From contig NIVC01000628.1 in NCBI GenBank assembly GCA_002269645.1, forward strand, positions 186,001-250,000: DNA of 64,000 nt. The letters run 5' to 3'. The DNA is from Macrostomum lignano (Eukaryota). The notes beneath the pieces were generated by a model, which did not search any database, was not told the origin of the DNA, and saw only the letters and a list, made by a program, of their open reading frames with translations. This document shows, piece after piece, positions 1 to 32,449 of the stretch. Numbering within the stretch: position 1 is the first letter of the stretch; the number at the start of each line of letters is the position of its first letter. The position numbers and the translations under genes were made by a program.

Positions 1-282
1 ACTTAAGTAGATACGTTACTTTAGTCATCCTTGAATCTAAAAATAGAAACTTTTTGAACGGCCCAGCCAATCAGCGCCGAGATAGTGTATACAAAGAGTA
101 TGCTAAAAGCATAAGGCGAGAATCCCCAAAAAACATAAATTTGTAATGTGGGAATCCCTGGCTTCAAAAAAAGACGAGTTTTCTTGGTTAAAAATAATAA
201 CTATAGTGAAGAGTTCCTAGTTTAAAAATAGCAATAGGCGGGAATCCTAAAGTTAAAAATAGAAAAGCTAGACTGCACTCAC

Positions 283-508
283 ATCCACACTCGGCCATGC
301 TGTTGAACAGCAGCCACCGGCCCTGCTGCGGCCAGCGGAGCAGGCAGACGTACCGGTCCCGATGCCGGCAGACGGCCGCCCACAGCCGCATTTGGCTAAC
401 TGCGGAGGCTGGGGAAACTCGAAGTCCGGCACCAGCCGCAAATCGGTGCTCAACTTCATCGGAATAGCTGATCTCTGATGCTGCGTGATCGTTGTCGCTG
501 GAGTGGGC
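283..508 (-). CDS. CYLD: CYLD-like protein, coding exon 4 (His box); gene probably continues beyond the window start
   Basis: Acceptor ccgcag|GCC and donor T|GTGAGT. MRLWAAVCRHRDRYVCLLRWPQQGRWLLFNSMAE matches CYLD [35 protein letters not shown]. Confidence 0.8.
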
Positions 509-535
509 CTGCGGATTTATGTGCTTTGTGAGTTC

Positions 536-653
536 ATCTCACCTGACCTCTGCAGATACCATAGAGATCTCATTTCACCTGACCTCTGAAAATACCAAAG
601 AGATCTTATCTCACCTGACCTCTGCAAATACCAAAGAGATCCCATCTCACCTG
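536..653. repeat. 36-bp tandem repeat x~3.3 including the splice donor
   Basis: cacctg at 540, 576, 612 and 648. Confidence 0.85.
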
Positions 654-1045
654 CACTCCGCAAAAGCAGTCGCGGCAGAAAGCAAAGCCGTTCACTCTGC
701 AGCTGTTCGCCGCGGCCAGGCAGCTGCGGCACTCCAGCCGGGCCAGCCGGCCGCAGACGGTGCAAGGCCTCGGCCGGCCAGCCAGCAGCCGGGAGATGTC
801 TATGGCCGGAAGTGGCACGGTGTCCGGCTCGGTCTGCAGCACCAGGCTGATTGGCGGCCGGGCAAAGGAGCCGGGCGGCAGGGCGCAGTGCAGCAGGAAC
901 TCGCAGTCCAGCAGCTGGCGTTCGGCGCCTTCGTCTGCCCTGACCAGCGCCCGCGAGAGCTGCAGGCGGTGGCGCGACTGGGCAACCGACGAGCGGCGAC
1001 GGTTGAGGGCGCCGCCAAGGAGGAGCTCCAGGCAGAGGCCGGGGT
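651..1045 (-). CDS. CYLD: CYLD-like protein, coding exon 3 (USP core plus B-box zinc module)
   Basis: Acceptor ctgcag|AC and donor CAG|GTGAGA. DPGLCLELLL...QLLDCEF...PISLVLQ...IDISRLLAGRPRPCTVCGRLARLECRSC...FCRDC matches CYLD DPEEFLNILF...[28 protein letters not shown]...FCKTC. Confidence 0.85.
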
Positions 1046-1111
1046 CTGCAGCGGTGAGTAAGAAATTGTAGGGATTTTAAGGTAATGGGAGATTTTATGC
1101 GATAAACGAGC

Positions 1112-1580
1112 GCTATATGTACTCAATGACCCTGAGCAAGGAAGAGTCTATACTCAATGACCCTGAGCAAGGAAGGGTCTGTACTCAATGACCCTGAGCA
1201 GGGAAGGGTCTGTACTCAATGACCCTGAGCAGGGAAGGGTCTGTACTCAATGACCTGAGTAAGGAAGGGTCTATACTCATTGACCCTGAGCAGGGAATGG
1301 TCTGTACTCAATGACCCTGAGCAGGGAATGGTCTGTACTCAATGACCCAGAGCAAGGAAGGGTCTGTACTCAACGACCCTGATCAAGGAAGGGGTCTGCA
1401 CTCAGTGACTCGAACAGGGAAGGCGTCTGTACTCAATGACCCTGATCAAGGAAGGGGTCTGTACTCAGTGACTCGAACAGGGAAGGCGTCTGTACTCAAT
1501 GACCCTGATCAAGGAAGGGGTCTGTACTCAGTGACTCGAACGGAAAGGGGGTCTGTACTCAATGATCCTGAGCAGGGAAG
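1112..1580. repeat. ~30-bp tandem repeat (ctgagcagggaagggtctgtactcaatgac)
   Basis: Direct inspection. Confidence 0.9.
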
Positions 1581-2462
1581 GGTAAGTGCCAATTTAAACA
1601 AACAAGTAAGTACAGGAGACAAAATGGGCGAAAAAGAACATCTAACACACTGTACTTGACGCTAACCAGCGGTACACACTCACAAGAGCTCACGTACACG
1701 CGGTCTTGAATGCATTTTTCCATTTAGAAAAATTCAAGATTAAGATAAAGAATGCCATGGGATCTGATACTGCTTAATCTTCAACAGAGCGGAGCGAGAG
1801 AGAGAGAGAGAGAGAAAGGATGCAGCTGTGAGATCGATGACCTTTCCTTCTCCTCTAACTGCCATTCAATTCGCTTGCAATGCCGGAACTCAGAGAAAAC
1901 AAACAAATAAATGAAAACTTGATAACCTGCCGCTGGCCACTGACTGATGGCTGCGCACAGCTGGCAAAGTGCAAAGGAGAGGGATCCGCTTTCCCCGAGC
2001 TGATGGGCCGACTGAAGTCATACAAAGAACTTTTTGGCGCAATCGAGAAAATCGCTTCGAAAATTTCCTCTTTGTGTATGACTAATCCTCAAATCCCGCT
2101 TTTGAGTCCTATAGACTAGTAATTTGACTAATTTTGTAGAATCTCAAGTCTATGTGGACCCCTGGCTTTCTCGATTTGTGCGTAGCAGACCTGCGCCTGC
2201 ATGAGTCTTTAAAACTTTCACATTGCTGAAATCGATGTGTAAATTATAGACCAGATTTTGAGAAAAGCTCAATTTCTGCAACTTGCCTCGAAGATTAACA
2301 ATCTCGTTAGTGCAGTGGGGCGCAGAGATAAAGCTCGGCCTGCATCCCTTGTCAAAGAAATTGGCTTCATTTTAAATATAAATTTATCGAATCTTAACCC
2401 GGCATTTGAATATAGCTCTATTTGACTGTGCTTATTGATCTGCCCCTGCACACTGGGTAGAT

Positions 2463-2843
<381 letters not shown>

Positions 2844-3139
2844 GGCAGCCAGGCGGGAGTGCGGGGGAGCGGAGAGGCTGAAGGGCCGAAAGCTCAGCTG
2901 GCCGTCAATCGATAAGTTGGCACGCGAGGCCACAGGGGAAGGAAGCGAGCCCTGCCCCCGTATTTGATTGCTCCAAAACTGGACTATAATTGGCACAAAG
3001 CTGAATCTCCCGGAGCGGCCATATGATGATGCCGGAGATTAAGTACTTATCACACTCGTAAGCTCGCAAACTTGTTGAGATTAAATAGTTGTTGTTATGT
3101 CGAAAAGTTCGCCAGAAATCCAGCTGCGACGGCTTAAGG

Positions 3140-3750
3140 CAGTGGGTCGGCAAACTTTTTACCTCAAGGGCCAAATGGGGAATCCAGACCATGACTGCGG
3201 CCAGAGGACGAGAGAGAGGAGATGGAATAGAGGAGAAGAGAGAAGAGAGGAAGAGATAGGAGAGAAGGGAGGGGAGAGAAGGGAGGGGAGAGAAGGGAGG
3301 GGAGAGAAGGGAGGGGAGAGAAGGGAGGGGAGAGAAGGGAGGGGTGAGACTGGAGGGGAGAGAAGGGAGGGGAGAGATTGGAGGGAAGAGAAGGGAGGGA
3401 AGAGAAGGGAGGGGAGAGAAGGGAGGGGAGAGAAGGGAGGGGAGAGAAGGGAGGGGAGAGAAGGGAGGGGAGAGAAGGGAGTGGATAGAAGGGAGGGGAG
3501 AGAAGGGAGGGGAGAGAAGGGAGGGGAGAGAAGGGAGGGGAGAGAAGGGAGGGGAGAGAAGGGAGGGGAGAGAAGGGAGAGAAGGGAGAGGAGAGAAGGG
3601 AGGGGAGAGAAGGGAGGGGAGAGAAGGGAGAGAAGGGAGAGGAGATTAGAGAGAAGAGAGCTAAGAGGCACAAGCCTTGAGACACTATTGTGAAGTTCAA
3701 AGGAGGCTTGGTGGGCCGCAAGTGGCCCGCGGACCGGAGTTTGCCTAAGG
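3140..3750 (+). mobile_element. hAT (MER58/Charlie-like) non-autonomous element with an internal (GGGGAGAGAAGGGA)n array
   Basis: Starts CAGTGGGTCGGCAAAC and ends GGCCCGCGGACCGGAGTTTGCC (degenerate TIR); GCTTAAGG at 3132-3139 and 3751-3758 could be an 8-bp TSD. Confidence 0.55.
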
Positions 3751-4475
3751 GCTTAAGGGAATGCCTTGGCTTTGGGGATCTAGCAATGGGGAAGCGGGCC
3801 AGCTCTGAGCAGTGGCAGATACGTTAGCGACCCCACTCGACTTCCCCTAACACGAATCGTCCCTCTTCCCTAAGTCGTTCCAAGGAAAGCGGCTGGTTGA
3901 GGCATTATTCGAATTCCTGCAGCACGAGTGTGGGTATATATTAGGCCTGAGCAAGGGAGATTCGTTGAGGATTTCGCGAGAGGCTGTCAGAGTCCGGGGA
4001 GCGGATATGAGAGCAAGCAAGGAGCTCAAGTGCTACTCGGCCCGCTAACCTCGGGTGCAAGTAGAAGCTGCGAGAGAGCGCCAGAACTGGAGTACTATGG
4101 GTATGCGTGTGAGCACTGCGCATTAGAGCTGGCCACGGCGCTGATTCTCACCAAAGAAGCAGCGTGTTCTCTAAACACCCCTGCTCGCTATACCTTTCTC
4201 TGATGCTCTTCATAAAAACTTTTCTACTAATCCAACTTTGGAGAGCTCAGTTCTGAAGTGTCGCATTCCGGAATTCCAGCCCCTGTGCAGCTCTTTCTTT
4301 ATTCTCCGTGTCTCTCCATCACAATCTTCATTCTCAGCTGCTGGGTGGAATGCAAAATTTTCAATGCAACCCCAGGAGATGCACTGCACGGATCTGGCTT
4401 CGGTTGCACGTACTTTAGGATGCAAAATTTACAAGGCAATGAAGGCAACGATTGATGCACGAAGCTGTCACTCAC

Positions 4476-4567
4476 CGACTTCGCCGCTTTTCAAATCTGG
4501 CGCCGAATCGAGGCTGCCGAGGTAGCGGCGCAGTTTCAGCACCTTGCCGGCTGGGACGAAGTTGGCC
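4476..4567 (-). CDS. CYLD: CYLD-like protein, coding exon 2
   Basis: Acceptor ccgcag|G and donor G|GTGAGT; 92 nt with phases 2/1 fitting both neighbours. Encodes ANFVPAGKVLKLRRYLGSLDSAPDLKSGEV, similar to CYLD [28 protein letters not shown]. Confidence 0.8.
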
Positions 4568-4654
4568 CTGCGGGTCGTTGTTGGAACAGGTTGGTTTGGT
4601 GAAGTAAGAGTTGGCTGCGTTTTTATGCCGTGTGCAGTGACTCTGGCCAAGCCT

Positions 4655-4935
4655 GCACCTCACTCAGCGCACCCATCTCACTTTGCACACCCACCTCACT
4701 CCGCACATCTACCTCACTCCACACACCCACCTCACTCCGCACAACCACCTCACTTCGCACAACCACCTCACTCCGCATACCCACCTCAATCCGCACAACC
4801 ACCTCAATCCGCATACCTACCTCACTCCACACACCCACCTCACTCCGCACACCCACCTCACTCCGCACACCCACCTCACTCCGCATACCTACCTCACTTC
4901 GCACACCTTACTCCGCACATCCACCTCAATCCGCA
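4655..4935. repeat. ~18-bp C/A-rich minisatellite (cacccacctcactccgca)
   Basis: Direct inspection. Confidence 0.9.
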
Positions 4936-5479
4936 CACCCAAATCACTCCTACCTCCATACCTATCAAGCAACCAGGCTACGCATTATCTATTAAGAGTA
5001 AAATTTCAGTTAAGCATAGCTTAGATACTAAAAAGGAATTCAAGCAAACAGTTTCCTTCCTGTTGCTCGATCCCCCAAGTCCAATTGAGCAGCTGCAATT
5101 CTGGCTAATCCCATAACTGAATTTGAAAATTGTAGCTCAAAATTCCGGCACCCGGCAGTGGCAGCTAGCCGGATATTGGGGCAGACATACAGAGCCAGCA
5201 CATCTCCATCATTCTGCTCTTGAGTCTGTATTTGCTCAGTGCGAGTCGTATTGTAGCCAACTGAGATGGGGATTTCGTTCTCCTCTTTCAGTTCAGTTCA
5301 ACACGATGAGCACAAGTTTTTTGCTTAGAAATGCACTCGTTTGTTTCCCAGTACTCAATCCGCGACATGCTTGCACTAAAAATTTCCCGAAGCACTTTCT
5401 AATGCACAGCATAAAACATGTCGGTTGGGGAACATTCACGCTATCTTTACCCAAAACCTTCCAACTTCACAGCTACTTC

Positions 5480-6735
5480 ACTCCGCCAGCTCACTCCAAA
5501 CACCCAGCTCACTCCAAACACCCACCTCACTCTAAACACCCACCTCACTCCAAACACCGACCTCACTTCAAACACCCACTCCCTCCAAACACCCCACCTC
5601 ACTCCAAACGCCCATCTCACTCCTAACACCCACCTTTTTCAAAACACCCATCTCACTCCGGAAACACCCATCTCACTCCAACCACCTATTTCACTCCAAA
5701 CACCCACCTCACTCCAAACACCTACCTCACCCCCCAAACACCCATCTCACTCCAAACACCCATCTCACTCCAAACACCTACCTCACCCCCCAAACACCCA
5801 TCTCACTCCAAACACCCACTCACTCCAATCACCCACCTCACTCCAAACACCCACCTCACTCCCCAAACACCCATCTCACTCCAAACACCAATCTCACTCC
5901 AAACACCCACCTCACTCCAAACACCCACCTCACTCCAATCACCCACCTCACTCCAAACATCCATCTCACTCAAAACACCCACCTCACTCACTAAACACCC
6001 ATCTCACTCAAAACACCCACCTCACTCCCCAAACACCCACCTCACTCCCTAAACACCCATCTCACTCAAAACACCCACCTCACTCCCCAAACACCCACCT
6101 CACTCCCTAAACACCCACCTCACTCCAAACACCCACCTCACTCCCCAAACACCCATCTCACTCCAAACACCCATCTCACTCCAAACACCCATCTCACTCC
6201 AAACACCTACCTCACTCCAAACACCCATCTCACTCCAAACACCCACCTCGCTCCCCAAACACCCATCTCACTCCAAACACCCACCTCACTCCCTAAACAC
6301 CCACCTCACTCCAAACACCCACCTCACTCCCCAAACACCCATCTCACTCCAAACACCCATCTCACTCCAAACACCCATCTCACTCCAAACACCCATCTCA
6401 CTCCAAACACCCACCTCACTCCCCAAACACCCATCTCACTCCAAACACCCACCTCACTCCCTAAACACCCACCTCACTCCAAACACCCACCTCACTCCCC
6501 AAACACCCATCTCACTCCAAACACCCATCTCACTCCAAACACCCATCTCACTCCAAACACCCATCTCACTCCAAACACCTACCTCACTCCAAACACCCAT
6601 CTCACTCCAAACACCCACCTCACTCCCCAAACACCCATCTCACTCCAAACACCTACCTCACTCCAAACACCCATCTCACTCCAAACACCCACCTCACTCC
6701 CCAAACACCCATCTCACTCCAAACGCCGATTTCAC
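5480..6735. repeat. 18-20-bp minisatellite (aaacacccacctcactcc), related to 4655-4935
   Basis: Direct inspection. Confidence 0.92.
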
Positions 6736-7604
6736 TCCATGCTGCCCTCGGATCTAATTTGAATTCGCAGCATCCTCGCAAGTAGCACAATAGAGTTCCA
6801 TTGGAAAGATCTAATTTCTAAAGTAGAAAACAGCAAAGCTAGAAAACCCTGAAGCTTTTGGCTGGAAAAGCCTCACTAAATGGGAGAAAAGAAGGTGATT
6901 ATGAAAACTTTGTCAAGCAATAAACTGCGTGAATTATTTACTACACAAGTGGAGAAGCAGGAACAGTGCGGTTAGTCTCGCAGGCCAGATGGGGCAGCAA
7001 AACTAGCCCAGGCGATGTGAGGATATAATGAGAAGAGTACTGGCAGCTGGCAACGTGTTTGCTTTAAGGGCTACAACTATCCCCCCTAAGCCGGATTGTT
7101 AGCAAACCTGTTGGAGATAGACGCGGAGGCGGCGAACCGGTTGTCAGGGGATTTTTTCCTCTTTACTGCACGGTCTCCCCAGCTGAGAGCGAGCAGTTGC
7201 TAGCTATAGAATCCTTCCCAAATCCCTGAGCGAAATCATCATCTTCTCCCTTTCATGGTGCCGCAGAAAAAAGCGATGGCATTGAATGAGCTAGGCTCTC
7301 TATGGCTACCGTTTAAACCCTGCTGAGTCCCCCGGATGGTTGCCAGGTGCTCCTCGCTAGCTAACTCCCTCCTCCCTCGTGCCGAGCATTGAGTTGTCGC
7401 TCGTAGCTTATGGGGGCGTTTGCACTTTGAAAAATCTGCATCACCCGAAATCATGCGTGCGGACTGCAGGGAGGGCGGGATGCGACTGGGAAATTGCTGG
7501 AACAGCACAGCCAGTATCCGTTGGAAAGGGAAGGCTGACTAATTCAAACGATAATGAGACGAAATTGAGAACAAAATGCACCTCTCCACACAGCAGCCAG
7601 AAGC

Positions 7605-8330
7605 ACTGCGTACAGCACCTACACGTCACTGCATACAGCACCTACACGTCACTGCATACAGCACCTACACGTCACTGCATACAGCACCTACACGTCACTG
7701 CTCATCATCTACACGTCACTGCATACAGCATCTACACATCAGTGCATACAGCACCTACACGTCACTGCATACAGCACCTACACGTCACTGCATACAGCAC
7801 CTACACGTCACTGCATACAGCACCTACACGTCACTGCATACAGCACCTACACGTCACTGCATACAGCACCTACACGTCACTGCATACAGCACCTACACGT
7901 CACTGCATACAGCACCTACACGTCACTGCTCATCATCTACACGTCACTGCATACAGCATCTACACATCAGTGCATACAGCACCTACACGTCACTGCATAC
8001 AGCACCTACACGTCACTGCATACAGCACCTACACGTCACTGCATACAGCACCTACACGTCACTGCATACAGCACCTACACGTCACTGCATACAGCACCTA
8101 CACGTCACTGCATACAGCACCTACACGTCACTGCATACAGCACCTACACGTCACTGCATACAGCACCTACACGTCACTGCATACAGCACCTACACGTCAC
8201 TGCATACAGCACCTACACGTCACTGCATACAGCACCTACTCGTCACTGCATACAGCACCTACACGTCACTGCATACAGCACCTACACGTCACTGCATACA
8301 GCATCTACAGGTCACTGCATACAGCATACA
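7605..8330. repeat. 23-bp satellite (cagcacctacacgtcactgcata)
   Basis: Period 23 read from the sequence. Confidence 0.95.
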
Positions 8331-9290
8331 GAGAACTTGCACTTTTAAACATTAGCATCATCCATTGCGTTCGTCCGAACCCACTTTCTCACCGATAACA
8401 GAAGAAAGTCCGGCTTGTCTTGCTACACATTGGACAAGCTCTGCATACATTACAGAGTAGCAAATCGAGCCTCAGAGACGGCTGAGACTCGGGAGACAGA
8501 ACAGAGAGAGAGAGAAGAGGGCGTCGCACTGTTACAGCATTCAATTAGCAAGCAGAATCCGCCTCAGGTCCTTCTCCAGGCTCAACCGCCTCCCGCTCCT
8601 CAGAGTCTGCACTGGCACTAAAATATTGCTTCATAGCAGAGACCGGCAGTCAAAGACGTTTTTTGATAATAATCCATTTTCCCGTACTCGCAGCAGGGCA
8701 GGCAAAATAGCTGGGAACATAATGGGCACGGGAGTGAAGCCAAAACAGTCGCTCTGCCATCCCCCTACGCGTTGCATTGCCTGCTGCCTGCTTTCCTGCA
8801 GAGAAGGGGGCGGCAGTGGAAGTGGCTGCCGCCGTGGCCACAGCCACGGTTTGCGCAGCTGCGCCGCAGGCAGGGCGCTCCCTGCGTGCGTCGCACGATT
8901 TTTTTCTTTTAGAAGAAGAAAAAGAAGGAAGACAGGCAAAAGCAAGAAAAATCGCCCGGCTAGTCAAAGGAATGCAGCACAGGGTGTCCTTTTTCTGTCT
9001 GTTGTTCCGTCATCAATTTTATTGCTTTCCCTACTGAGCAATGGGAGGGTTTATTGCCAATTATTGGTCAGTAAAAGTTTATTTCAGTCACCAGTTTACT
9101 GCCCAGGGCGGTTGAGGCAATAAAAAGTATTTAGAAGCAAAAAATTCAGTACTTGTTGATTAGAGGGGTGTTTCAGAAAGCGAGGTTGGAACTTAAGATC
9201 CATATGTTTATGGTACAAACGGAGTATAGGTGGAACCTATACTTAGGACGAATGAGTTGTCCAAATTTCTAAATTCAGAGTTAGTGTCTA

Positions 9291-9824
9291 CTAGCAATCC
9301 AGCCCGTTCGGGGAGTGCAAAAGGGAAAATGAAAATATTGCTAATATATTAAAGAATAGACCAGTGCTTCCAGTAAGCCCTGGCATCTCAGCGAATCCAC
9401 CAGCTGTACGCCTTGACAATAACATCTTAGCAATGCTCCCAGTAAGCCTTGACATCTCAAAAAACATTCAAACAATCAGTTCCGGATTCAAACAATTCAA
9501 GTTGAAGACAAAGATATTCATAAATTTTACAATTTAATAAGCTAGGTATAGCTATTTATAACTCATAGCAGCAGCTCAAGAATTGAAGTTTAGTCTATGG
9601 CCATAGACGTATTGAGCTCTCACTGCAAGAAAAATACACTAATTAGATAGGTAAAATACAGTTTTTCGAATATTTAATCCCTTTAAAATGAAGCAATCTC
9701 TTAGCCACAACCCATGTACCGTCACGGAAAAATTTCTGATCGAATGGTGCAAGTCTGGTGAAAATCGGTTGAGCCGTTTTTCGCACAGACAGACAGACAG
9801 ACAGATACAGCTTAGATATATAGA
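9291..9824 (-). mobile_element. Non-autonomous Helitron-like element (534 bp)
   Basis: Minus strand: A|TCTATATAT, (CTGT)n, GGCTCAACCGATT at the 5' end; CCCGAACGGG hairpin then CTAG|T at the 3' end; inserted between A and T. Confidence 0.7.
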
Positions 9825-9964
9825 TAGAAGATTTCACTGCTTCGAAAAAATATGCTTGCCATCTTGGCTGCCTGTGGCTCTCATCATTTAGATTTTTAAC
9901 ATTTCCAATTGTTCCAACATTTCCTGTCAGGTATAAGTCACGAGTCGTGCTTGGCTCTAAAAAT

Positions 9965-10194
9965 GGGTTGTGGCCTAGTGGTCAGAGCGTCGGAACTCAC
10001 GACTGAAAGGTCGGGGGTTCGATTCTCGACCTACTCGGAACAATTTGTGTCCTTGAGCAAGAGACACTTAACCCTGCATTGCATTGCAGGGCGTGTGGCG
10101 AACCCCCAGTCCTTGGACTGAACAGCCGTACGCAGCCTTCAGACGCGCCGCGCAATAGCTGCACCGGCAGGTGTAATCAATTGTTACTATTATT
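9965..10194 (+). mobile_element. tRNA-derived SINE
   Basis: A box TGGCCTAGTGG, B box GGTTCGATTC, conserved-domain-like GTGTCCTTGAGCAAG..ACACTTAACCC, and a short AT tail. Confidence 0.7.
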
Positions 10195-10744
10195 TGGAAC
10201 TATGGTTTCAAACTTTAAGACACACTCAACGCTCAAAGAATCTTTGGGTTCGAAAATAGAGTTTTTTTCTAGTTTTTTATTTATTTGAAAGTGCGCAGGA
10301 AATGTTATTCAGTTAGCACTCTATATAGTAGGTTACTGAGGCGGCTGCTCACAACTCAACAGGCCTGACCTGCACGCCTCATCCGAGGCCTAGAGGGGGC
10401 AGCTGCGTGGACCCGACTCCGGAAAATTGAATTTCCACATCCACTGTCGTCTTCTTCTTACGCGGCCTCCTTGCAGCTTCCAGCGGCCTCGCGTCTGCAC
10501 TGCCCGCCGGCTCTTGCCTGCACCAAAGGGTTCGGTGCAGAAAGTCGACCCTTGGGACGCCTTGCGGGCTTACTTGAACACTCGAACTATTAATGCACCG
10601 CCATGTGATAATATAAGCCTATGATGCCAGCGCCACTAATGGAAAACAAGTAGGGAAACTTTTTATGAAAAACTATGGAATCATATGATGGGATTGGACC
10701 GCCGGCTCTTGGGCACTTAAAATATTGCGCTGAAATAGGGCTCT

Positions 10745-11175
10745 TCACCTCTCACTGCCTCACTCAGACTGTGACTGCCTCACACTCTCTCTCTCTCTGC
10801 CCCTCTCACTGCCTCACTCAGACTGTGACTGCCTCACTCTCTCTCTCTCTCTGCCCCTCTCACTGCCTCACTCAGACTGTGACTGCCTTACTCTCGCTCT
10901 CTCTGCCCCTCTCACTGCCTCACTCAGACTGTGACTGCCTCACTCTCTCTCTCTCTGCCCCTCTCACTGCCTCACTCAGACTGTGACTGTCTCACTCTCT
11001 CTCACTCTGCCCCTCTCACTGCCTCACTCAGACTGTAACTGCCTCACTCTCTCTCTCTCTGCCCCTCTCACTGCCTCACTCAGACTGTGACTGTTTCACT
11101 CTCTCTCACTCTGCCCCTCTCACTGCCTCACTCAGACTGTGACTGCCTCACTCTCCCTCACACTGCTTCACTCTC
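10745..11175. repeat. ~50-bp CT-rich tandem repeat (ctctcactgcctcactcagactgtgactgcctcact...)
   Basis: Direct inspection. Confidence 0.85.
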
Positions 11176-11769
11176 TCTCACTCTGCACAAACACACGTCA
11201 AAGTACAATAACGATACGGCCACAAGAGCAGTCCAAGTGCAATGCCGCATATACGCGATAAAAAGAGTCCACAGGCGGCTCTGGATAAAGAAATGAAAAA
11301 GCGTAGAAAGCAAGTCTCGGTCCCTGTCAGGCTCATCCGGCTCGATGGACGGCATAAAATAGCGTATTTGCATAATAGCGTGGGGCCCGACATCGCTTAT
11401 CTTCATACATCCGCTGTCCCCTCACTCTCTCACCCTCTTCCCCCACTCTTGACCGGACAGAAAGGGACCGGGGGGGGGGTATTCGGCATGCAGTATGCAG
11501 TTTGCGCCAAGCAGACAGAAAACTAAACAGGGCCAAATTGTCTGCCGCATCGCCCAACACGATTAGTCATTAAGAAGTTCATGCGCATCAGGCGGACCGC
11601 ACGCATTTATCCAATGCTTTTGCTGCGAATTCAAGCGTGCGGACTGCAGGGAGGGCGGGATGCGACTGGGAAATTGCTGGGACAGCCCAGCCAGTAACTG
11701 TTGGAAAGGGGACGGCTGACTAATATTATAGCCGGCGTTGAGGAGTGAGAAGAAATTGCACCTCTCCAC

Positions 11770-14150
11770 CCACAGGCATTGCATACAGCACCCATAGACA
11801 TTGCATACAGCACCCATAGACATTGCATACAGCACCCATAGACATTGCATACAGCACCCACAGGCACTGCATACAGCACCCATAGATATTGCATACAGCA
11901 CCCACAGGCACTGCATACAGCACCCATAGACATTGCATACAGCACCCATAGACATTGCATACAGCACCCATAGACATTGCATACAGCACCCATAGACATT
12001 GCATACAGCACCCATAGACATTGCATACAGCACCCATAGACATTGCATACAGCACCCATAGACATTGCATACAGCACCCACAGGCACTGCATACAGCACC
12101 CATAGATATTGCATACAGCACCCACAGGCACTGCATACAGCACCCATAGACATTGCATACAGCACCCAGACATTGCATACAGCACCCATAGACATTGCAT
12201 ACAGCACCCATAGACATTGCATACAGCACCCATAGACATTGCATACAGCACCCATAGACATTGCATACAGCACCCATAGACATTGCATACAGCACCCACA
12301 GGCACTGCATACAGCACCCATAGATATTGCATACAGCACCCACAGGCACTGCATACAGCACCCATAGACATTGCATACAGCACCCATAGACATTGCATAC
12401 AGCACCCATAGACATTGCATACAGCACCCATAGACATTGCATACAGCACCCATAGACATTGCATACAGCACCCATAGACATTGCATACAGCACCCATAGA
12501 CATTGCATACAGCACCCATAGACATTGCATACAGCACCCATAGACATTGCATACAGCACCCACAGGCACTGCATACAGCACCCATAGATATTGCATACAG
12601 CACCCACAGGCACTGCATACAGCACCCATAGACATTGCATACAGCACCCATAGACATTGCATACAGCACCCATAGACATTGCATACAGCACCCATAGACA
12701 TTGCATACAGCACCCATAGACATTGCATACAGCACCCATAGACATTGCATACAGCACCCACAGGCACTGCATACAGCACCCATAGACATTGCATACAGCA
12801 CCCATAGACATTGCATACAGCACCCATAGACATTGCATACAGCACCCACAGGCACTGCATACAGCACCCATAGATATTGCATACAGCACCCACAGGCACT
12901 GCATACAGCACCCATAGACATTGCATACAGCACCCATAGACATTGCATACAGCACCCATAGACATTGCATACAGCACCCATAGACATTGCATACAGCACC
13001 CACAGGCATTGCATACAGCACCCATAGACATTGCATACAGCACCCATAGACATTGCATACAGCACCCATAGACATTGCATACAGCACCCATAGACATTGC
13101 ATACAGCACCCATAGACATTGCATACAGCACCCATAGACATTGCATACAGCACCCATAGACATTGCATACAGCACCCATAGACATTGCATACAGCACCCA
13201 TAGACATTGCATACAGCACCCACAGGCACTGCATACAGCACCCATAGATATTGCATACAGCACCCACAGGCACTGCATACAGCACCCATAGACATTGCAT
13301 ACAGCACCCATAGACATTGCATACAGCACCCATAGACATTGCATACAGCACCCATAGACATTGCATACAGCACCCATAGACATTGCATACAGCACCCATA
13401 GACATTGCATACAGCACCCACAGGCACTGCATACAGCACCCATAGACATTGCATACAGCACCCATAGACATTGCATACAGCACCCATAGACATTGCATAC
13501 AGCACCCACAGGCACTGCATACAGCACCCATAGATATTGCATACAGCACCCACAGGCACTGCATACAGCACCCATAGACATTGCATACAGCACCCATAGA
13601 CATTGCATACAGCACCCATAGACATTGCATACAGCACCCATAGACATTGCATACAGCACCCACAGGCATTGCATACAGCACCCATAGACATTGCATACAG
13701 CACCCATAGACATTGCATACAGCACCCATAGACATTGCATACAGCACCCATAGACATTGCATACAGCACCCATAGACATTGCATACAGCACCCATAGACA
13801 TTGCATACAGCACCCACAGGCATTGCATACAGCACCCACAGGCACTGCATACAGCACCCATAGACATTGCATACAGCACCCATAGACATTGCATACAGCA
13901 CCCATAGACATTGCATACAGCACCCACAGGCACTGCATACAGCACCCATAGACATTGCATACAGCACCCACAGGCACAGCATACAGCACCCATAGACATT
14001 GCATACAGCACCCACAGGCACTGCATACAGCACCCACAGGCATTGCATACAGCACCCACAGGCATTGCATACAGCACCCACAGGCACTGCATACAGCACC
14101 CACAGACACTGCATACAGCACCCACAGGCACTGCATACAGCACTCACAGG
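11770..14150. repeat. 22-bp satellite (cagcacccatagacattgcata), ~108 copies
   Basis: Period 22; open in all three minus-strand frames. Confidence 0.97.
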
Positions 14151-14559
14151 CACTGCAGCAGCCACACGTCGCACTAAGTTTTAGGAAGCCAATGCAGAAA
14201 GTGCAGTGCCATCACCCAGGCCCTCAAGACGCCGTCCCATCCCCAGACACGCAGGAATTTCCGAGCCCAATTGCCAGTCTGTATAGGAAAATATAATTTA
14301 ACCCCAGGGAAGATACACAGCATATAAAGTGGCATTTTAGCATTCAAGCATAGCATAGCTTAACAGCAAGGAGGGTGGCGGAGGAGAATGAGATCATCAT
14401 GTTTTTAATTCTGCCTTCAAGTCACTGGCTCTTGCCGCGTCCGCTATATAATCGTAAGTGCGTAGCTTAAGTGGCGCCGATAAAAGTACGGCTGCAAAAT
14501 ACTGGGCCGTGGATTTTTAACAGAAATGCACACGCTCTTCCAAAACGTCCCGTTCCACT

Positions 14560-14968
14560 AAACATCCGAAATACCCCCACGAAACATTTGAAACACCCCC
14601 GCATTAAACATCCGAAATACCCCACAATAAACGTCCGAAATACCCCACACCAAACATCCGAAATACCCCACACCAAACATCCGAAATACCCCACAATAAA
14701 CATCCGAAATACCCCACACTAAACGTCCGAAATACCCCACACCAAACATCCGAAATACCCCACAATAAACATCCGAAATACCCCACAATAAACGTCCGAA
14801 ATACCCACACCAAACATCCGAAATACCCCACAATAAACGTCCCAAATACTCCACACCAAACATCCGAAATACCCCACAATAAACACCCAAATACATCACA
14901 ATAAACATCCGAAATACCCCACACTAAACACCCGAAATACCCACACTAAACACCCGAAATGACCCACA
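14560..14968. repeat. ~23-bp tandem repeat (aaacatccgaaataccccacac) starting at the CYLD-like exon 1 donor
   Basis: Direct inspection. Confidence 0.9.
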
Positions 14969-14973
14969 CTCAC

Positions 14974-15548
14974 TCCCTGAGATCCGCCACGATCTCTCTG
15001 CGCAGGCAGTTCTGAATCGCGCAGAATTTCTCAGGGTCGCCCGGCCGCCGCGGCCGCTCCAGCAGAGGCCGGTAGGGCGAGCCGGGCAGGGCGAACATGG
15101 CCACCAGCAGGGCGTCCAGAAACGACGAGTCCGTGTGGCCCTGAATGCCCCGACCGCGGCCGGTGACCGGCATAGGCCAGTCCTCCTCATCGTCGTAGTC
15201 TTCGTCATCAGTGGCATCGTCGTCCTCGACATCGCTGGAGCAGCGGTCGCCGTCCTGCTGGCTGGTCGGCGGCCAACTTGCCGACGGTGCAGCCTGCACT
15301 ACCGGAAAAGCCGCGGCCCCGGCACTGGCCGTGGAAGCGACAGGCGGGAAGCTTTTGCCGCCAGTAGAGCGCATCTGCACAAAGTGCAGCGGATTCTCCA
15401 GCGTTCGCAGGGGCCGCTGCAGCGGGTTGGTCGGGTTCAGGGTAGTGTACTTGTACATGGCCGCCTCTCGCTCCGAGATCACCTCCGTGTGGCTGACTGG
15501 CGAGCGTTGGCCGTCGCCCAGCGTCACCAGCGTGTATTTGGTTGCCAT
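14974..15548 (-). CDS. CYLD: CYLD-like USP-family pseudo-deubiquitinase, coding exon 1 (low-complexity/acidic N-terminus plus Cys box)
   Basis: RGIQGHTDSSFLDALLVAMF...LRREIVADLR matches the CYLD Cys box [20 protein letters not shown]...LRTEIVNPLR. ATG at 15548; donor GA|GTGAGT at 14974/14973 (phase 2). Confidence 0.85.
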
Positions 15549-15774: not shown

Positions 15775-15860
15775 GGGGTGCCGTAGCCCAGTGGTCTAGC
15801 GCGGCGCTCTGATGTGCCAGAGGCCCAGGCTCGATTCCAAGTGCAGTCACATTAATTTGG
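15775..15860 (+). mobile_element. tRNA-derived SINE head (degenerate)
   Basis: A-box-like TAGCCCAGTGG and B-box-like GCTCGATTCC; no clean acceptor stem seen. Confidence 0.45.
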
Positions 15861-16440
15861 GGCTAAATTGGAATCTCGGCTTGGCTCTGCTCGTGCAATT
15901 AACGGCCTTGAGGGCCACCCCCCCCCCAAGGCACAGTGAAGTGTACATGCCTAACGATAGATAAAGTTAGGGCCGCTGTACGTATGTGCGTTATTTATTT
16001 AGAAATTTAAGTACTTTTGATGCACAAAACACTTTTGGTGTCAAAGAGCCAAAATTTGTACTTTTTTGTAGAATCCACTGTCCAAGAAGGGCATGATTGA
16101 CAAATAAATCAAGGGATTTTTCACGATCGCTTTTGTTTTTATTTTGAATGCGAAGAAAATTGCAGTTCGATGGGAAACTCAAGGAATTTAATATAGTTAG
16201 TCCTGAATAAAAAGCGGCTATATAAATGACAAACAGAATTAAGGGAATCGATTTAAATCAAGATTTCAGCTCGTAACAGCTTAAAAGTTCGTAAACCAGA
16301 AAGATTTTAATCACTAAAAATTTTGCTTATTAGACTTGAAAACTATAACAAGAGTTAATTATGAAAGAAGCGAATTTAAGACAGTTTTTCCAACATGAAG
16401 TTAGTTTTTAGGCGGCAAAAACAGACCGACAAACACTGGT

Positions 16441-16539
16441 TTAACCGTTGACCAAGGCTTTCAGTTTGCCCTGGTCAGCCAAAGCTTTGGTCTCCGTGCC
16501 GCCGCCGATGTACTTGCCGTTAATGAAAACTTGGGGAAC
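16441..16539 (-). CDS. GLRX: Dithiol glutaredoxin, exon 2
   Basis: Acceptor ttcgcag|GTT; VPQVFINGKYIGGGTETKALADQGKL...* completes the TVP and GG glutaredoxin motifs; 102 aa in total. Confidence 0.92.
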   Translation of the reverse strand, partial: VPQVFINGKYIGGGTETKALADQGKLKALVNG

Positions 16540-16619
16540 CTGCGAACGTGCAGTAGTATGTTGTGATCATGGGACAGTAGTATGATGCGACTGAAACTAT
16601 GTAAGTGTCTGCGCCCTTA

Positions 16620-17200
16620 GAATGATTTCAGTGCTGGACTCGGGGCGATTCTCAGTGGACTCAGGGGGGCGGTTCTCAGTGGACTCGGGGGGGGGGGCGA
16701 TTCTCAGTGGGCTCAGAGGGCGATTCTCAGTGGACTTGGGGGGGGAGGGCGATTCTCAGTGGACTCAGGGGGGGACGATTCTCAGTGGACTCAGGGGGGG
16801 GGGGCGATTCTCAGTGGTCTCAGGGGGGAGGGCAATTCTCAGTGGACTCATGGGCAGAGCGATTCTCAGTGGGCTCAGGGGGAGGGCGATTCTCAGTAGA
16901 CTTAGGGGGCCGAATCTCAGTGGACTCAGGGGAAGGGCGATTCTCAGTAGACTTAGGGGGCCGAATCTCAGTGGACTCAGGGGAGGGCGATTCTCAGTAG
17001 ACTCAGGGGGAAAGCGATTCTCAGTAGACTCAGGGGGAAAGCGATTCTCAGTAGACTCAGGGGGAAAGCGATTCTCAGTAGACTCAGGGGGAGGGCGATT
17101 CTCAGTAGACTCAGGGGGGAGGGCGATTCTCAGTAGACTCAGGGGGGAGGGCGATTCTCAGTAGACTCAGGGGGCCGAATCTCAGTGGACTCGGGGAAAT
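16620..17200. repeat. ~27-30-bp G-rich tandem repeat in the glutaredoxin intron
   Basis: gggcgattctcagtggactcagggg units. Confidence 0.9.
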
Positions 17201-17313
17201 TTTCAGTGTTGGATTTGCAGGCAATTCATTGAGTCACTGAGATCACAGACTCTAGCTAAGCAATGTATGCGTGTAAGATTTCAGCCTACACTCAAGGACA
17301 GTCAGTAACTTAC

Positions 17314-17523
17314 TGTGCGCGACTTGGTCATGCTGCACAGAGTGTCCTGAATGTTGCTACAGTCCTTCCGTTTTTCGATCTCTTCCACAGTGTATGCAAT
17401 TCCACAGCTGTCAAGCGCCTTTTTAGCCATGGTGCAGAAGGGGCAACTGGACTTAGAAAACATCATTACTTTGTTTGAGGCAATCTTCTCTTCAATCCAG
17501 TTACGGGTATCTCCACTGGCCAT
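17314..17523 (-). CDS. GLRX: Dithiol glutaredoxin, exon 1
   Basis: MASGDTRNWIEEKIASNKVMMFSKSSCPFCTMAK (CPFC active site); donor ACA|GTAAGT. Confidence 0.92.
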
Positions 17524-21557: not shown

Positions 21558-22769
21558 TTTTATCTATTTTTATTAGCTTTAGTTATAATTCAAATTTGCA
21601 GCTTAGATTATATAGAAAGGCATGTCTAATTAAATACCATTAGTAGATAAGTTGGCAACACAATTTGACAGCAAACAAAATGATTGGAACCCCTTGCTAT
21701 TGGCTTTCTTTGGCATAAGATTAGGATAGACTAGTAATCAGCACCCTCTGTTAGTGTTGGGGAGCCAGAGTACAAGTTGTTTTTAATAAACTACATGTAG
21801 CATCTCTTTGCAATATTCCTTAGTAGTCCTTTGTAAGCCTTGACATGTTAGCAATTCCCCCCACAAGCTTTAACATATCAACTCCCCCCTTTGAAATCTC
21901 AGCGATACCCCCATAAGCCTTTTAATCTTAAAAAAATCAGTCAATGTTCTAACCCTAACCCTAGCCTGACCCCCATAGTCAAGAAGGTGGCAAGTGCATG
22001 CAGGAATCAATTTATGGAAAAATCCTTGGTGCACGCCAATGTATGCCAATTTTTTAAAACCCTTAACATGACGTTTCTATTGCATGCCAAAAATCTTGAA
22101 TACCAAAAATCAAGATTTTTATTCTATATTGACAATGTATTTGCATTCTTGATTTGAATATTAACCATATCCTATATACTAAAAATGAGTTGTCTGTGGG
22201 TATGCGATAGATTTCAGAAAAATTGGCTCAACCGATTTTCTTCAAACTTGCACCATTCGATCAGAAATTTTCCTGGGACGGTACATGCATCTTGGCTAAG
22301 AAATTGCTCAATGTTAAAGGGATTAAATATTCGAAAAACATGCTTTTTTTGCAAAGGTCAAGCAGCTCTTTCAACCTGAAATGCATTGTAAGAATGCTAG
22401 AGAAAAAACTGACTGACTGAATTCCGATTGTGATAAAGATTGCATCACAACAAGTTGAAAACAGTGCCAAAGAAATGCACACACGACTTGATTGAAATTG
22501 CGTAACCATATTGCTAACTTTAATTGAGACTGATTCTGGCTGACTGAGAAATTGATTATGTCATAACTTTTTACTCCAATTGACTTGCTGTAAGAATTGA
22601 ATTATAAGGGCCACAATTCATGTTCTCCAATTGAAAAGAGATAGCCCTGATGCGAACAGACTGGAATGCTAATGTAGCGACCTGGGTTCGAATCTTAGTA
22701 GTGCAAAAAGATTTTTTTTATTAAAACACCTTAAAAACACAACAAAACTGCTAAACATCAAAGAAGCGC

Positions 22770-25755
22770 AATGTCAAACATATAAGAGCCAACATATCGA
22801 ACATAAAAGAGTTACCATGTCAAACATAAAAGAGCTACCATGTCAAACATTAAAGAGCTACCATGTCGAACATTAAAGAGCCACCATGTCAAACATTTAA
22901 GAGCCACCATGTCAAACATAAAAGAGCCACCATGTCAAACATAAAACAGCCACCATTTCGAACATTAAAGAGCCACCATTTCGAACATTAAAGAGCCACC
23001 ATTTTGAACATTAAAGAGCCACTATGTCAAACATTTAGGAGCCACCATGTCAAACATATATGTGACTTTATGTCAAATATTAAAGAGCCACCATGTCAAA
23101 CCTAAAAGAGCCACCATGTCGAACATAAAAGAGCCACAATGTCAAACATTAAAGAGCCACCATTTCAAACCTAAAGGAGCCACCATGTCGAACATTAAAG
23201 AGCCACCATGTCGAACATAAAAGAGCCACCATATCAAACATAAAAGAGTTACCATGTCAAACATTAAAGAGCCACCATGTCAAACATAAAAGAGACAACA
23301 TGTCAGACATTAAAAAGCCACCGTATCAAACATAAAAGAGTTACCATGTAGAACATTAAAAAGCCACCATTTCAAACCTAAAAGAGCCACCATGTCAAAC
23401 ATTAAAGAGCCACCTTGTCAAATATTAAAGAGCCACCATTTCAAACCTAAAAGAGCCACCATGTCAACATTAAGAAGCCACCATGTCAAACATTAAAAAG
23501 CCACAATGTCAAACATTAAAGAGCCACCATTTCAAACCTAAAGGAGCCACCATGTCGAACATACAAGAGCCTCCATGTCAAACATTAAAGAGTCACCATG
23601 TCAAACATTAAAGAGCCACCGTTTCAAACCTAAAAGAGCCACCATGTCGAACATTAAAAAGCCACCATGTCAAACATTAAAGAGCCACAATGTCAAACAT
23701 TAAAGAGCCACAATTTCAAACCTCAAGGAGCCACCATGTCGAACATTAAAGAGCCACCATGTGAAACATAAAAGAGCCACCATATCAAACATACATGTAA
23801 AAGAGTTACTATGTTAAAAATTAAAGAGCCACCATGTCGAACATTAAAGAGCCACCATGTCAAACATTAAAGAGCCACCATGTCAAATATAAAAGAGCCA
23901 CCATTTCGAAAATTAAGGAGCCACCATTTCGAAAATTAAAGAGCCACCATGTTAAACATTAAAGGGCCACCTTGTCAAATATTAAAGAGCCACCATTTCA
24001 AACCTAAAAGAGCGACCATGTCGAACATACAAGAGCCACCATGTCAAACATAAAGGAGCAGCCATGTAGAACATAAAACAGCCACCATTTCGAAAATTAA
24101 GGAGCCACCATTTCGAAAATTAAGGAGCCACCATGTCGAACATTAAAGAGCCACATTGTCAAATATTAAAGAGCCACAATGTCAAACATTAAAGAGCCAC
24201 CATTTCAAACCTAAAGGAGCCACCATGTCGAACATTAAAGAGCCACCATTTCGAACATAAAAGAGCCACCATATCAAACATAAAAGAGTTACCATGTTAA
24301 AAATTAAAGAGCCACCATGTCGAACAATAAAGAGCCACCATGTCAAACATAAAACAGACACCATTAAGAACATTAAAGAGCCACCATGTCGAACATTAAA
24401 GAGCCACCATGTCAAACATAAAACAGCCACCATTTCGAAAATTAAGGAGCCACCATTTCGAAATTTAAAGAGCCACCATGTTAAACATTAAAGGGCCACC
24501 TTGTCAAATATTAAAGAGCCACCATTTCAAACCTAAAAGAGCAACCATGTCGAACATACAAGAGCCACCATGTCGAACATAAAAGAGCAGCCATGTAGAA
24601 CATAAAAGAGCCACCATGTCGAACATAAAAGAGCCACCATGTCAAACATAAAAAAGCCAGCATGTCAAACATAAAAGAGCCAACATGAAGAACATTAAAG
24701 AGCCACCATGTCGACCATTAAAAGAGCCACCATGTCGAACATACAAGAGCCACCATGTCAAACATAAAAAAGCCACCATGTCAAACATTAAAGAGCCACC
24801 GTTTCAAACCTATAAGAGCCACCATGTCGAACATTAAAAAGCCACCATGTCAAACATTAAAGAGCCACAATGTTAAACATTAAAGAGCCACCATTTCAAA
24901 CCTAAAGGAGCCACTATGTCAAACATAAAAGAGCCACCATATCAAACATAAAAGAGTCACCATGTTAAAAATTAAAGAGCCACCATGTCGAACATTAAAG
25001 AGCCACCATGTCAAACAAAAAAAAGCCACCATTTCAAAAATTAAAGAGCCACCATGTCAAACATTAAAGAGCCACCATGTCGAACATTAAAGAGCCACCA
25101 TGTCAAACATAAAACAGCCACCATTTCAAAAATTAAAGAGCCACCATGTCAAACATTAAAGAGCCACCATGTCGAACATTAAAGAGCCACCATGTCGAAC
25201 ATAAAAGAGCCACCATATCAAACATAAAAGAGTTACCATGTTAAAAATTAAAGAGCCACCATGTCGAACAATAAAGAGCCACCATGTCAAACATAAAACA
25301 GACACCATTAAGAACATTAAAGAGCCACCATGTCGAACATTAAAGAGCCACCATGTCGAACATAAAAGAGCCACCATTTCGAAAATTAAGGAGCCACCAT
25401 TTCAAACCTAAAAGAGCCACCATGTCGAACATTAAAAAGCCACCATGTCGAACATTAAAGAGCCACCATGTCGAACATTAAAAAGCCAACATGTCGAACA
25501 TTAAAAAGCCAACATGTCAAACATAAAAGAGCCACCATGTCAAACCTAAAAAAGCCACCATGTCAAACATAGAAGAGCCACCATGTCAAACATAAAAGAG
25601 CCACCATGTCAAACATAAAAGAGCCACCATGTCAAACATAAAAGAGCCACCATGTCAAACATAAAAGAGCCACCATGTCAAACATAAAAGAGCCACCATG
25701 TCAAACATAGAAGAGCCACTATGTCAAACATAAAAGAGCCACCATGTCAAACATT
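22770..25755. repeat. 21-bp satellite (aaagagccaccatgtcaaaca[t/a]), ~140 diverged copies
   Basis: Direct inspection. Confidence 0.95.
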
Positions 25756-32394: not shown

Positions 32395-32449
32395 GTAAGA
32401 TTCAAGACTGTTATTGATTTCTTTTATTTGTCCCGGATCAAGAGGTATG

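Follow-up and report, generated by a model that had tools for sequence, protein, structure and literature searches.

In K63/M1 ubiquitin signalling, CYLD acts as a central negative regulator. Dimerisation of its USP domain is mediated by the B-box, with I790 in the interface (PMC5031558). Among pseudo-deubiquitinases of the USP family, the known roles are those of scaffolds or allosteric partners (PMC10919355), while in a neighbouring family OTULINL/FAM105A is an inactive paralog of the M1-specific deubiquitinase (DUB) OTULIN (PMC5135002). Duplication of CYLD itself has given rise to a CYLD-like paralog in vertebrates, CYLDL (PMC5381560). No catalytically dead CYLD paralog was found in the literature searched, and all CYLD relatives that we inspected, that of Macrostomum lignano included, keep the catalytic motifs (99-100% of 88 aligned active sequences), in line with the preliminary description of the locus analysed here, which knew of no such paralog. 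This locus is a CYLD-like gene on the minus strand of a 64-kb stretch of DNA, referred to as a whole as the window, in whose coordinates all positions are given.

Results

The visible part of the gene consists of four exons (15548-14974, 4567-4476, 1045-651 and 508-283), which join into an open frame of 1288 nt, or 429 codons with 0 stops. Each is bordered by AG and GTGAG(T/A), making 8/8 splice sites canonical, and the in-frame, stop-free four-exon structure proposed earlier was thus reproduced. The remaining five frames of the coding sequence hold 7-12 stops in four cases and 1 in the fifth, and nucleotide-shuffled versions are stop-free in 5e-5 of trials; together these exclude chance as the origin of the open frame.

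Exon 1 (14974..15548) begins with the ATG at 15548-15546 and encodes a 133-residue non-CYLD N-terminus, part of which is acidic and of low complexity. After it come the degenerate Cys box and the opening helices of the USP domain, and the exon's last residues are ...ADLR(E) before a GTGAGT donor in phase 2. Exon 2 (4476..4567, 92 nt), encoding (E)ANFVPAGKVLKLRRYLGSLDSAPDLKSGEV(D), was the top of 723 AG...GT candidates in the correct phase, and its length and boundaries equal those of the M. lignano CYLD exon HQFVRADHVIKLREQLDKLGKVPGMLGEEK. Exon 3 (651..1045) contains DPGL (formerly DPEE), degenerate central strands, a deletion in the QMPRFGK loop and most of the B-box, and exon 4 (283..508) the beta12-13 region, the degenerate His box CRHRDRYVCL and LFNSMAE. 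Exon 4 closes in phase 1 at the donor GTGAGTGCAG (282-273), and the gene continues past the edge of the window: positions 1..282, the start of the last intron, are AT-rich and without CYLD-like coding sequence or any further CYLD-like exon. The last exon, some 55 C-terminal codons by analogy with the M. lignano CYLD exon GLESGYNIPEV...AAMYR, lies beyond the edge, and could carry a lesion of its own. The frame that had been called intact is so for the visible 429 codons, a statement that does not reach the 3' end.

The predicted protein matches human CYLD (2VHF) with a phmmer E-value of 1.1e-17. Among 1.8 billion representative proteins there are 172 matches, apparently all CYLD relatives, and catalytic motifs are kept in all of the approximately 60 examined in full. 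The best match (E=2e-35) is M. lignano CYLD (UniRef A0A1I8HQJ8 / PAA64070.1), 37% identical over 294 aligned residues, which has in common with our protein a USP fold with an inserted B-box and the derived, lineage-specific motifs LVLQT and YVCxLR. The Pfam UCH profile (PF00443) does not match the 429-residue model even at E<=1, whereas both M. lignano and vertebrate CYLD do match it. An AF2 model (pLDDT 77, pTM 0.76) resembles 2VHF in a Foldseek comparison (TM 0.73, E=3.5e-18), a similarity to be read with the model's bias toward the CYLD fold, as it is driven by an alignment of CYLDs. On this evidence the earlier assignment, a USP domain of CYLD type that carries a B-box, stands.

In a neighbour-joining tree the protein groups with the CYLDs, and 195/200 bootstraps pair it with M. 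lignano CYLD as its sister. At 0.93 substitutions per site, its terminal branch far exceeds the median of 0.19 and is about 3.5 times as long as the 0.27 of the sister, which corresponds to a 3.5-fold faster evolutionary rate; such a long branch fits relaxed constraint as well as new function. A search of approximately 15 billion predicted proteins found neither an ortholog or allele of the CYLD-like gene nor a similar protein derived from transcripts, the best match being 38% identical, and exact look-ups gave no match. At least three loci of M. lignano encode canonical CYLD. The window and the surroundings of M. lignano CYLD have no gene order in common, no gene of the window being found near the latter, and this absence argues neither for nor against paralogy.

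Gene structure tells a similar story of common descent with M. lignano CYLD. Three intron positions are exactly alike and a fourth differs by 7 codons; those after LRE, EEK and SMADxxG are common to both genes, the intron after exon 4 corresponding to that after FFDSMADRSG, while an intron inside GIQ|GH of M. lignano CYLD is absent here. The introns themselves are very different in size: in M. lignano CYLD the four that separate USP-domain exons are all shorter than 0.4 kb, whereas those of the CYLD-like gene reach 10 kb. Intron 1 (4568..14973), of 10.4 kb compared with 73 bp for its M. lignano homolog, consists mainly of tandem-repeat arrays (22-bp x109, 23-bp x32, 18-bp x68 and others), and intron 3 (509..650, 142 bp) is nearly all a 36-bp tandem repeat that reiterates the donor-like site CAG|GTGAGAT. 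A processed (retro)pseudogene, intronless and with a poly(A) remnant, is ruled out by the three introns of the visible part, all of which occupy ancestral positions or lie close to them.

The 133-residue N-terminus bears out the previously noted stretch of about 130 residues ahead of the USP domain, with acidic low-complexity sequence. It matches no CYLD N-terminus, nor anything else among the 172 collected proteins (nearly all CYLD relatives), and is unrelated to the approximately 460-residue N-terminus of M. lignano CYLD. The upstream gene is indeed a glutaredoxin (Pfam E=2.9e-19), with its TAA at 16443-16441, about 890 bp from the ATG. The reported absence of CAP-Gly domains also holds, with no Pfam CAP_GLY match in the protein and no CAP-Gly-like exon anywhere in the 64-kb window; it is, however, less distinctive than was thought, since M. 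lignano CYLD, the closest active relative, is likewise without a Pfam-detectable CAP-Gly.

In the HMMER alignment to human CYLD 2VHF, Ser142, Arg406 and Asn423 sit opposite the catalytic Cys, His and Asp. The codons agree with those first reported: in the degenerate Cys box GIQGHTDSSFLDA (15111..15149), the catalytic Cys has become Ser142 (TCG, 15125-15123), in the His box AAVCRHRDRYVCL the catalytic His has become Arg406 (CGG, 355-353), and FFDSM has become LFNSM, with Asn423 (AAC, 304-302) in place of the catalytic Asp. The Cys-to-Ser replacement needs two base changes, as was pointed out, and the same holds for His to Arg. Within the Cys box, the conserved Asn two residues ahead of the Cys is also replaced (N140D, GAC, 15131-15129), as is the Tyr after it (Y143F, TTT, 15122-15120); in 88 active CYLDs, the aligned N, C and Y columns are 100% conserved. 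Read from the aligned codons, then, none of the catalytic Cys, His and Asp is kept, nor is the Cys-box Asn; these four columns are 99-100% conserved in the 88 active CYLDs and unchanged in M. lignano CYLD. The substitutions in exon 4 are I402R, T404R, S405D, H406R, F410L, F421L, D423N and D427E.

Further losses affect motifs outside the catalytic residues. The QMPRFGK loop, which is nearly invariant in CYLDs and full in M. lignano CYLD, is interrupted by a 9-residue deletion between codons 295 and 296 (at 828/827), the DPEE motif reads DPGL, and the stretch opposite the CYLD segment PLLKIRS...YFYQIFMEKNEK is degenerate and of low confidence in the AF2 model. In total 18/50 invariant residues are lost, and the indels relative to CYLD are all in frame.

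The B-box zinc-finger insertion (485..764, C317 to H362, across the exon 3/4 junction) has fared otherwise. Its pattern CTVC...CRSC...CRDC...H...H keeps the six conserved Cys, as originally noted, and the conserved distal His (C317, C320, C328, C331, C346, C349 and H362). V319 occupies the position of human CYLD I790, the dimer-interface residue.

Codon usage and the distribution of losses bear on whether the gene has been maintained. GC3 is 0.80 in the CYLD-like coding sequence (0.80 in exon 1, 0.85 in codons 1-60 and 0.77 in exon 2), compared with 0.72-0.87 in neighbouring genes and a GC content of 0.40-0.52 in non-coding DNA; a high GC3 could outlast the death of a gene for some time. The CYLD-like gene keeps 32/50 invariant columns but 21/127 variable ones. 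Invariant residues are lost at 15/24 positions in catalytic motifs versus 3/26 elsewhere (Fisher p=3e-4, with motif windows picked after viewing the alignment), and this clustering suggests that relaxation has been selective rather than uniform. Under simulated unconstrained substitution, the frame stays stop-free in 2.5% of cases at 20% amino-acid divergence and in 0.1% at 40%. Taken together, GC3, splice sites, ancestral introns, the simulation and the clustering of losses speak for a coding gene that has been maintained rather than for a pseudogene in decay.

Discussion

We propose, with a probability of roughly 0.55, that the locus is a protein-coding, lineage-specific paralog of Macrostomum-type CYLD and a pseudo-deubiquitinase of the CYLD subfamily. 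The selected pseudoenzyme suggested in the preliminary description is upheld as regards the loss of catalytic residues, and the coding-type signals give its selective maintenance indirect support. The strongest rival reading, which we regard as unlikely rather than far-fetched, is that of an unprocessed pseudogene, that is, a duplicated, non-functional CYLD whose visible frame is open only because its final loss was recent. The lack of a similar protein in the databases searched would be expected of such a copy, as would a branch 3.5 times that of its sister, the loss of all catalytic residues and 18/50 invariant residues along with nine residues of the QMPRFGK loop, the replacement of the parental-type N-terminal 460 residues by 133 unrelated ones, introns swollen with satellite arrays and a 3' end beyond the window; the multiplicity of canonical CYLD loci in M. 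lignano (at least three) further implies that redundancy is plentiful in the lineage. What this history does not accommodate well is the state of the 429 codons, with 0 stops or frameshifts over four exons and all splice sites canonical, a GC3 of 0.80 that resembles live neighbours and not the surrounding DNA, and a simulation that permits only a small neutral share of the divergence. The concentration of losses in catalytic motifs, with the B-box and core residues kept, points instead to long selection after catalysis was lost.

The remaining explanations question the paralogy, the loss of activity or the data. Were the gene the sole CYLD ortholog of its species, with CYLD activity lost altogether, the absence of a second CYLD within the 64-kb window would follow, but CYLD has intact catalytic motifs in all relatives that were inspected, M. 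lignano among them, and the long branch and different neighbourhood (glutaredoxin upstream) better fit a relocated duplicate; we consider this improbable. A hydrolase with non-canonical residues, for example with Ser142 as nucleophile and His403, three residues ahead of the lost His, is very hard to defend. There is a Ser at the nucleophile position and a nearby His in CRHRDRYV, and a precedent exists in USP53 and USP54, once called pseudoenzymes, which have been re-classified as active (PMC12037411). Cys-box Asn, His, Asp and the QMPRFGK loop have nevertheless changed together, and on the strand His403 does not line up with the canonical His. The precedent also differs in kind, as USP53 and USP54 kept Cys and His, unlike the CYLD-like protein. 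That the key codons reflect an error of sequencing or assembly is scarcely credible, given that the Cys-to-Ser and His-to-Arg replacements take two base changes each and that at least 18 invariant positions differ consistently over three exons.

If the gene is a maintained paralog, its product is probably a non-enzymatic pseudo-deubiquitinase, of a kind already known from other families. Its history would have begun with a DNA-level duplication of a flatworm CYLD gene, the duplicate gaining a new, short N-terminus and losing its deubiquitinase chemistry while retaining the USP scaffold and B-box. The protein would then act non-catalytically, most likely through the intact B-box, the CYLD dimerisation module, which could give homodimers, or heterodimers with active CYLD, in the role of scaffold or dominant-negative modulator. 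Degeneration of several ubiquitin-contact elements makes high-affinity binding of ubiquitin chains appear less likely, and the decoy function once suggested is weakened accordingly by the QMPRFGK deletion, the altered DPEE and the decayed PLLKIRS... stretch. As for regulation of an active CYLD paralog, also raised at the outset, a canonical CYLD is documented in M. lignano, but there is no second CYLD within the window. That a selected dead paralog pairs with active CYLD via the B-box interface, and so tunes K63/M1 deubiquitination in a regenerating flatworm, is a speculative proposal to which we give rather low odds. MPN+/MPN- pairs offer a comparison for a DUB/pseudo-DUB heterodimer, and we know of no such pair described for CYLD.

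A natural dead CYLD with its B-box kept would amount to a ready-made dominant-negative or scaffold form, and a pseudo-deubiquitinase here would extend the list of these proteins to the CYLD subfamily. If, on the other hand, the duplicate is dying, in a genome that is polyploid and rich in repeats, it would be an ordinary by-product of gene duplication. RNAi works in Macrostomum, an experimentally tractable model of regeneration, which makes the idea of such a role accessible to experiment.

Compared with known systems, the gene stands apart from other CYLD duplicates. Several of the matches (e.g. P0052, P0058, P0060 and P0074), which we take to be vertebrate CYLD-like sequences, keep Cys, His and Asp and are thus presumably active. 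USP39 and PAN2/USP52, USP-family pseudo-deubiquitinases (among which USP53/54 were formerly counted), have kept the USP fold and are missing catalytic residues, as here; they are of ancient origin, conserved across many lineages and have functions that have been demonstrated, whereas the CYLD-like protein belongs to the CYLD subfamily and is apparently lineage-restricted. OTULINL/FAM105A differs in its OTU fold, its vertebrate distribution and its known expression, but, like the proposed CYLD-like pseudo-deubiquitinase, it is a dead paralog that accompanies an active DUB in the M1/K63 branch of signalling.

Structure of the window gene

The minus-strand CYLD-like gene with replaced catalytic residues (hereafter the window gene) begins with an ATG-started open frame at 15548, which closes at a GTGAGT donor at 14974. 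A tblastn search of the window with a human CYLD sequence, used as a lead only (all conclusions are based on database sequences), returned three aligned pieces, at 15161-14976, 920-645 and 394-290. Exon 2 was missed by this search, and the joining phases of the flanking pieces require an additional exon of length 3n+2. Of the 723 stop-free AG...GT intervals that lie between the outer exons, all of which were enumerated, a single one stood out, at 4567-4476, encoding ANFVPAGKVLKLRRYLGSLDSAPDLKSGEV. The final model, entirely on the minus strand, thus consists of exon 1 (15548-14974), this exon 2, exon 3 (1045-651) and exon 4 (508-283), with AG before and GTGAG after every exon.

The visible part of the spliced gene comprises 1288 nt, or 429 codons, and contains no stops. 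One leftover base and a GTGAGTGCAG donor at 282 indicate that the gene runs beyond the left window edge; no CYLD-like coding sequence was found in 1-282. The preliminary description had reported exons joining in frame at canonical splice sites without stops, which the four-exon model bears out, and had read the catalytic codons exactly: Ser142 is TCG (15125-15123) and Arg406 is CGG (355-353). Asn423 is encoded by AAC (304-302).

Relationship to CYLD and probable origin by duplication

HMMER against PDB sequences aligns the window protein to the USP domain of human CYLD (2VHF, E=1.1e-17), with GIQGHTDSSFLDA at the Cys-box position and CRHRDRYVCLL...LFNSMAE opposite the His box ... FFDSMAD. The replaced catalytic positions correspond to C601, H871 and D889 of human CYLD. 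There was no Pfam UCH match, either with single exons or with the complete model. When 1.8 billion representative proteins were scanned in full with HMMER, 172 hits were obtained, all of which, as far as they were read, are CYLD relatives; the best is Macrostomum lignano CYLD (A0A1I8HQJ8 / PAA64070.1; E=2e-35, about 37-38% identity). Synonymous sites are saturated between the window gene and this nearest relative (37% amino-acid identity). The Cys box, His box and FFDSMAD are intact in every relative inspected and in 99-100% of 88 aligned active sequences, and the collection scanned held no counterpart of a dead form of CYLD. In a neighbour-joining tree of 83 sequences, the window gene pairs with M. 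lignano CYLD as its sister (195/200 bootstraps), on a terminal branch of 0.93 substitutions per site versus 0.27 for its sister and a median of 0.19. Two of the checks proposed in the preliminary description, an alignment to CYLD and a phylogeny, place the gene among the CYLDs.

M. lignano CYLD has introns after ...NCLRE, ...GEEK, ...FCK and ...SMADRSG. The first, second and fourth of these occupy the same positions in the window gene and the third is offset by seven codons, whereas an intron of M. lignano CYLD inside GIQGH, between Q and G, is lacking from the window gene. These common positions rule out a retrocopy and identify the window gene as a DNA-level duplicate. The N-terminal 133 residues of the window protein match no CYLD N-terminus. 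CAP-Gly domains, earlier described as absent, have neither a Pfam match in the window protein nor an exon within the 64-kb window; M. lignano CYLD likewise has no Pfam-detected CAP-Gly. No synteny was found between the window and the 10 kb on each side of the M. lignano CYLD locus. M. lignano has three or more canonical CYLD loci (L001, L002 and L003), with products more than 90% identical. Polyploidy in its past is the presumed cause, and in such a setting dead or diverged additional copies could arise.

Loss of the active site in a retained scaffold

Conservation was judged against 88 active CYLD USP domains, with columns at least 95% conserved counted as invariant. The window gene keeps 32 of 50 invariant columns, versus 50/50 for M. 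lignano CYLD, and 21 of 127 variable ones. The 18 invariant losses are concentrated in the Cys box, QMPRFGK loop, His box and FFDSMADR box, with 15/24 positions lost there versus 3/26 outside (Fisher p=3e-4, approximate because the motif windows were set after viewing the alignment). The Cys box carries N140D, C142S and Y143F; a 9-residue deletion takes out PRFGK, and DPEE becomes DPGL; the His box carries I402R, T404R, S405D, H406R and F410L, and the FFDSMADR box F421L, D423N and D427E. Sequencing error can be rejected, as at least 18 invariant positions differ and the Cys to Ser and His to Arg replacements take two base changes each. Residual activity by way of Ser142 and His403 is improbable.

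The B-box, whose cysteines had been described as kept, retains 6/6 of them together with the distal histidine. Val occupies the I790 position in the window protein and M. lignano CYLD alike. An AlphaFold2 model computed with a CYLD alignment as input has pLDDT 77 and pTM 0.76, and reaches TM 0.73 against 2VHF; the stretch opposite the CYLD segment PLLKIRS...YFYQIFMEKNEK is modelled with low confidence and is poorly conserved.

Pseudoenzyme or pseudogene

The reading that we favour, at a probability of roughly 0.55, is that the window gene encodes a CYLD-type pseudo-deubiquitinase. That it is instead a pseudogene seems less likely, even though the lineage has redundant canonical CYLDs at three or more loci, and a 3' exon lies beyond the window edge, so that the open frame covers the visible 429 codons only. 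Against decay stands the absence of any stop in these codons, when four of the other five frames contain 7-12 and the fifth 1; a fraction of 5e-5 of nucleotide shuffles of the coding sequence lacked stops. Every insertion or deletion relative to CYLD preserves the frame. GC3 is 0.80 overall, with 0.69-0.86 for the single exons and 0.85 for codons 1-60, compared with 0.72-0.87 in the neighbouring PHD-finger, GPCR and ASC/DEG-ENaC genes and 0.40-0.52 GC in the non-coding DNA around. Simulated unconstrained substitution left 19%, 2.5% and 0.1% of sequences stop-free at 10%, 20% and 40% amino-acid divergence, respectively; these are substitutions only, and indels would reduce the fractions further.

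The long branch and the targeted losses suggest that most of the divergence, active-site loss included, arose with the frame and scaffold under selection. Judged from its sequence, the lineage was probably long maintained as a functional pseudoenzyme, though it may no longer be one. The selected pseudoenzyme envisaged in the preliminary description has indirect support from the open frame, GC3, the clustered losses and the simulation. The proposed role as a ubiquitin-chain decoy fares worse and appears less likely, because the QMPRFGK loop, DPEE motif and central strands, presumably at or near the ubiquitin-binding cleft of USP domains, are degenerate.

Repeats and neighbouring genes

In 509-664 (minus strand), which takes in intron 3 and the exon 3 end, the intron is almost wholly a 36-bp tandem repeat of 3.6 copies, each unit carrying a donor-like consensus CAG/GTGAGAT and an acceptor-like TTTGCAG. 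If splicing used the following donor, 36 nt further downstream, 12 in-frame codons (VRWDLFGICRGQ) would be inserted. Intron 3 could have been made or lengthened by tandem duplication of this splice-site-bearing unit. Introns of the window gene (4568-14973, 1118-1583 and 2458-3660) are swollen by satellite-like arrays: 22-bp x109 (11767-14157), 23-bp x32 (7604-8326), 18-bp x68 (5486-6739), 23-bp x18 (14556-14970), 52-bp x8 (10741-11166), (TAGA)96 (2458-2842) and 31-bp x15 (1118-1583). The homologous introns of M. lignano CYLD, in contrast, measure only 64-324 bp.

A 196-bp element at 15787-15981, 240-430 bp upstream of the window-gene ATG, is single-copy in the window and 91-92% identical to a sequence present once, some 8 kb downstream, at each of the three M. 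lignano CYLD loci (L001 22013-22204; L002 22230-22421; L003 11047-11238). It is probably a SINE, with a tRNA-like 5' part yet no ARAGORN or Rfam call, and its presence near CYLD genes at the window and these loci may be coincidence. A further repeat, of 677 bp and adjoined by a satellite of ~23-bp units (together at 22188-25700), is 88% identical to M. lignano contig NIVC01003961 (L002 304-969). The repeats in common with M. lignano contigs point to a source in or near the genus Macrostomum.

Directly upstream of the window gene, on the same strand, lies a two-exon CPFC glutaredoxin gene (16441-17523, minus; 102 aa; Pfam E=2.9e-19). It stops ~890 bp from the window-gene ATG, as previously stated. 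Its single intron is occupied by a 51-bp tandem repeat (16642-16998), and its exact protein, like the exon-1 open frame of the window gene, is absent from a 15-billion-protein collection. Elsewhere in the window are plus-strand genes for a PHD-finger protein (31971-33849), a rhodopsin-family GPCR (45250-49865) and an amiloride-sensitive (ASC/DEG-ENaC) channel (57619-62374). The best database match of the GPCR is a partial, 60% identical M. lignano protein wrongly named 'Innexin'. A broken Ty3/gypsy-type LTR retroelement (36642-41873, minus) has gag-like, protease-RT, RNase H-like and integrase zinc-finger ORFs in different frames, and is adjoined by a DUF3504-containing ORF (36642-37301).

Possible function and comparison with known systems

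CYLD USP domains dimerise constitutively via their B-box (PMC5031558). Our best guess is that the window protein would act without catalysis, as a dimerisation partner or scaffold, perhaps a dominant-negative partner of active CYLD.

The literature searched contains no dead CYLD paralog. A vertebrate CYLD duplicate, CYLDL, is known (PMC5381560); judged from likely CYLDL sequences among our hits, it keeps the catalytic residues that are replaced in the window gene. OTULIN, the other M1-specific deubiquitinase, has a dead paralog in FAM105A (PMC5135002). Pseudo-deubiquitinases make up about 13% of deubiquitinases and include USP39 and PAN2 of the USP family (PMC10919355). The class is already known, and a dead member of the CYLD subfamily would add to it.
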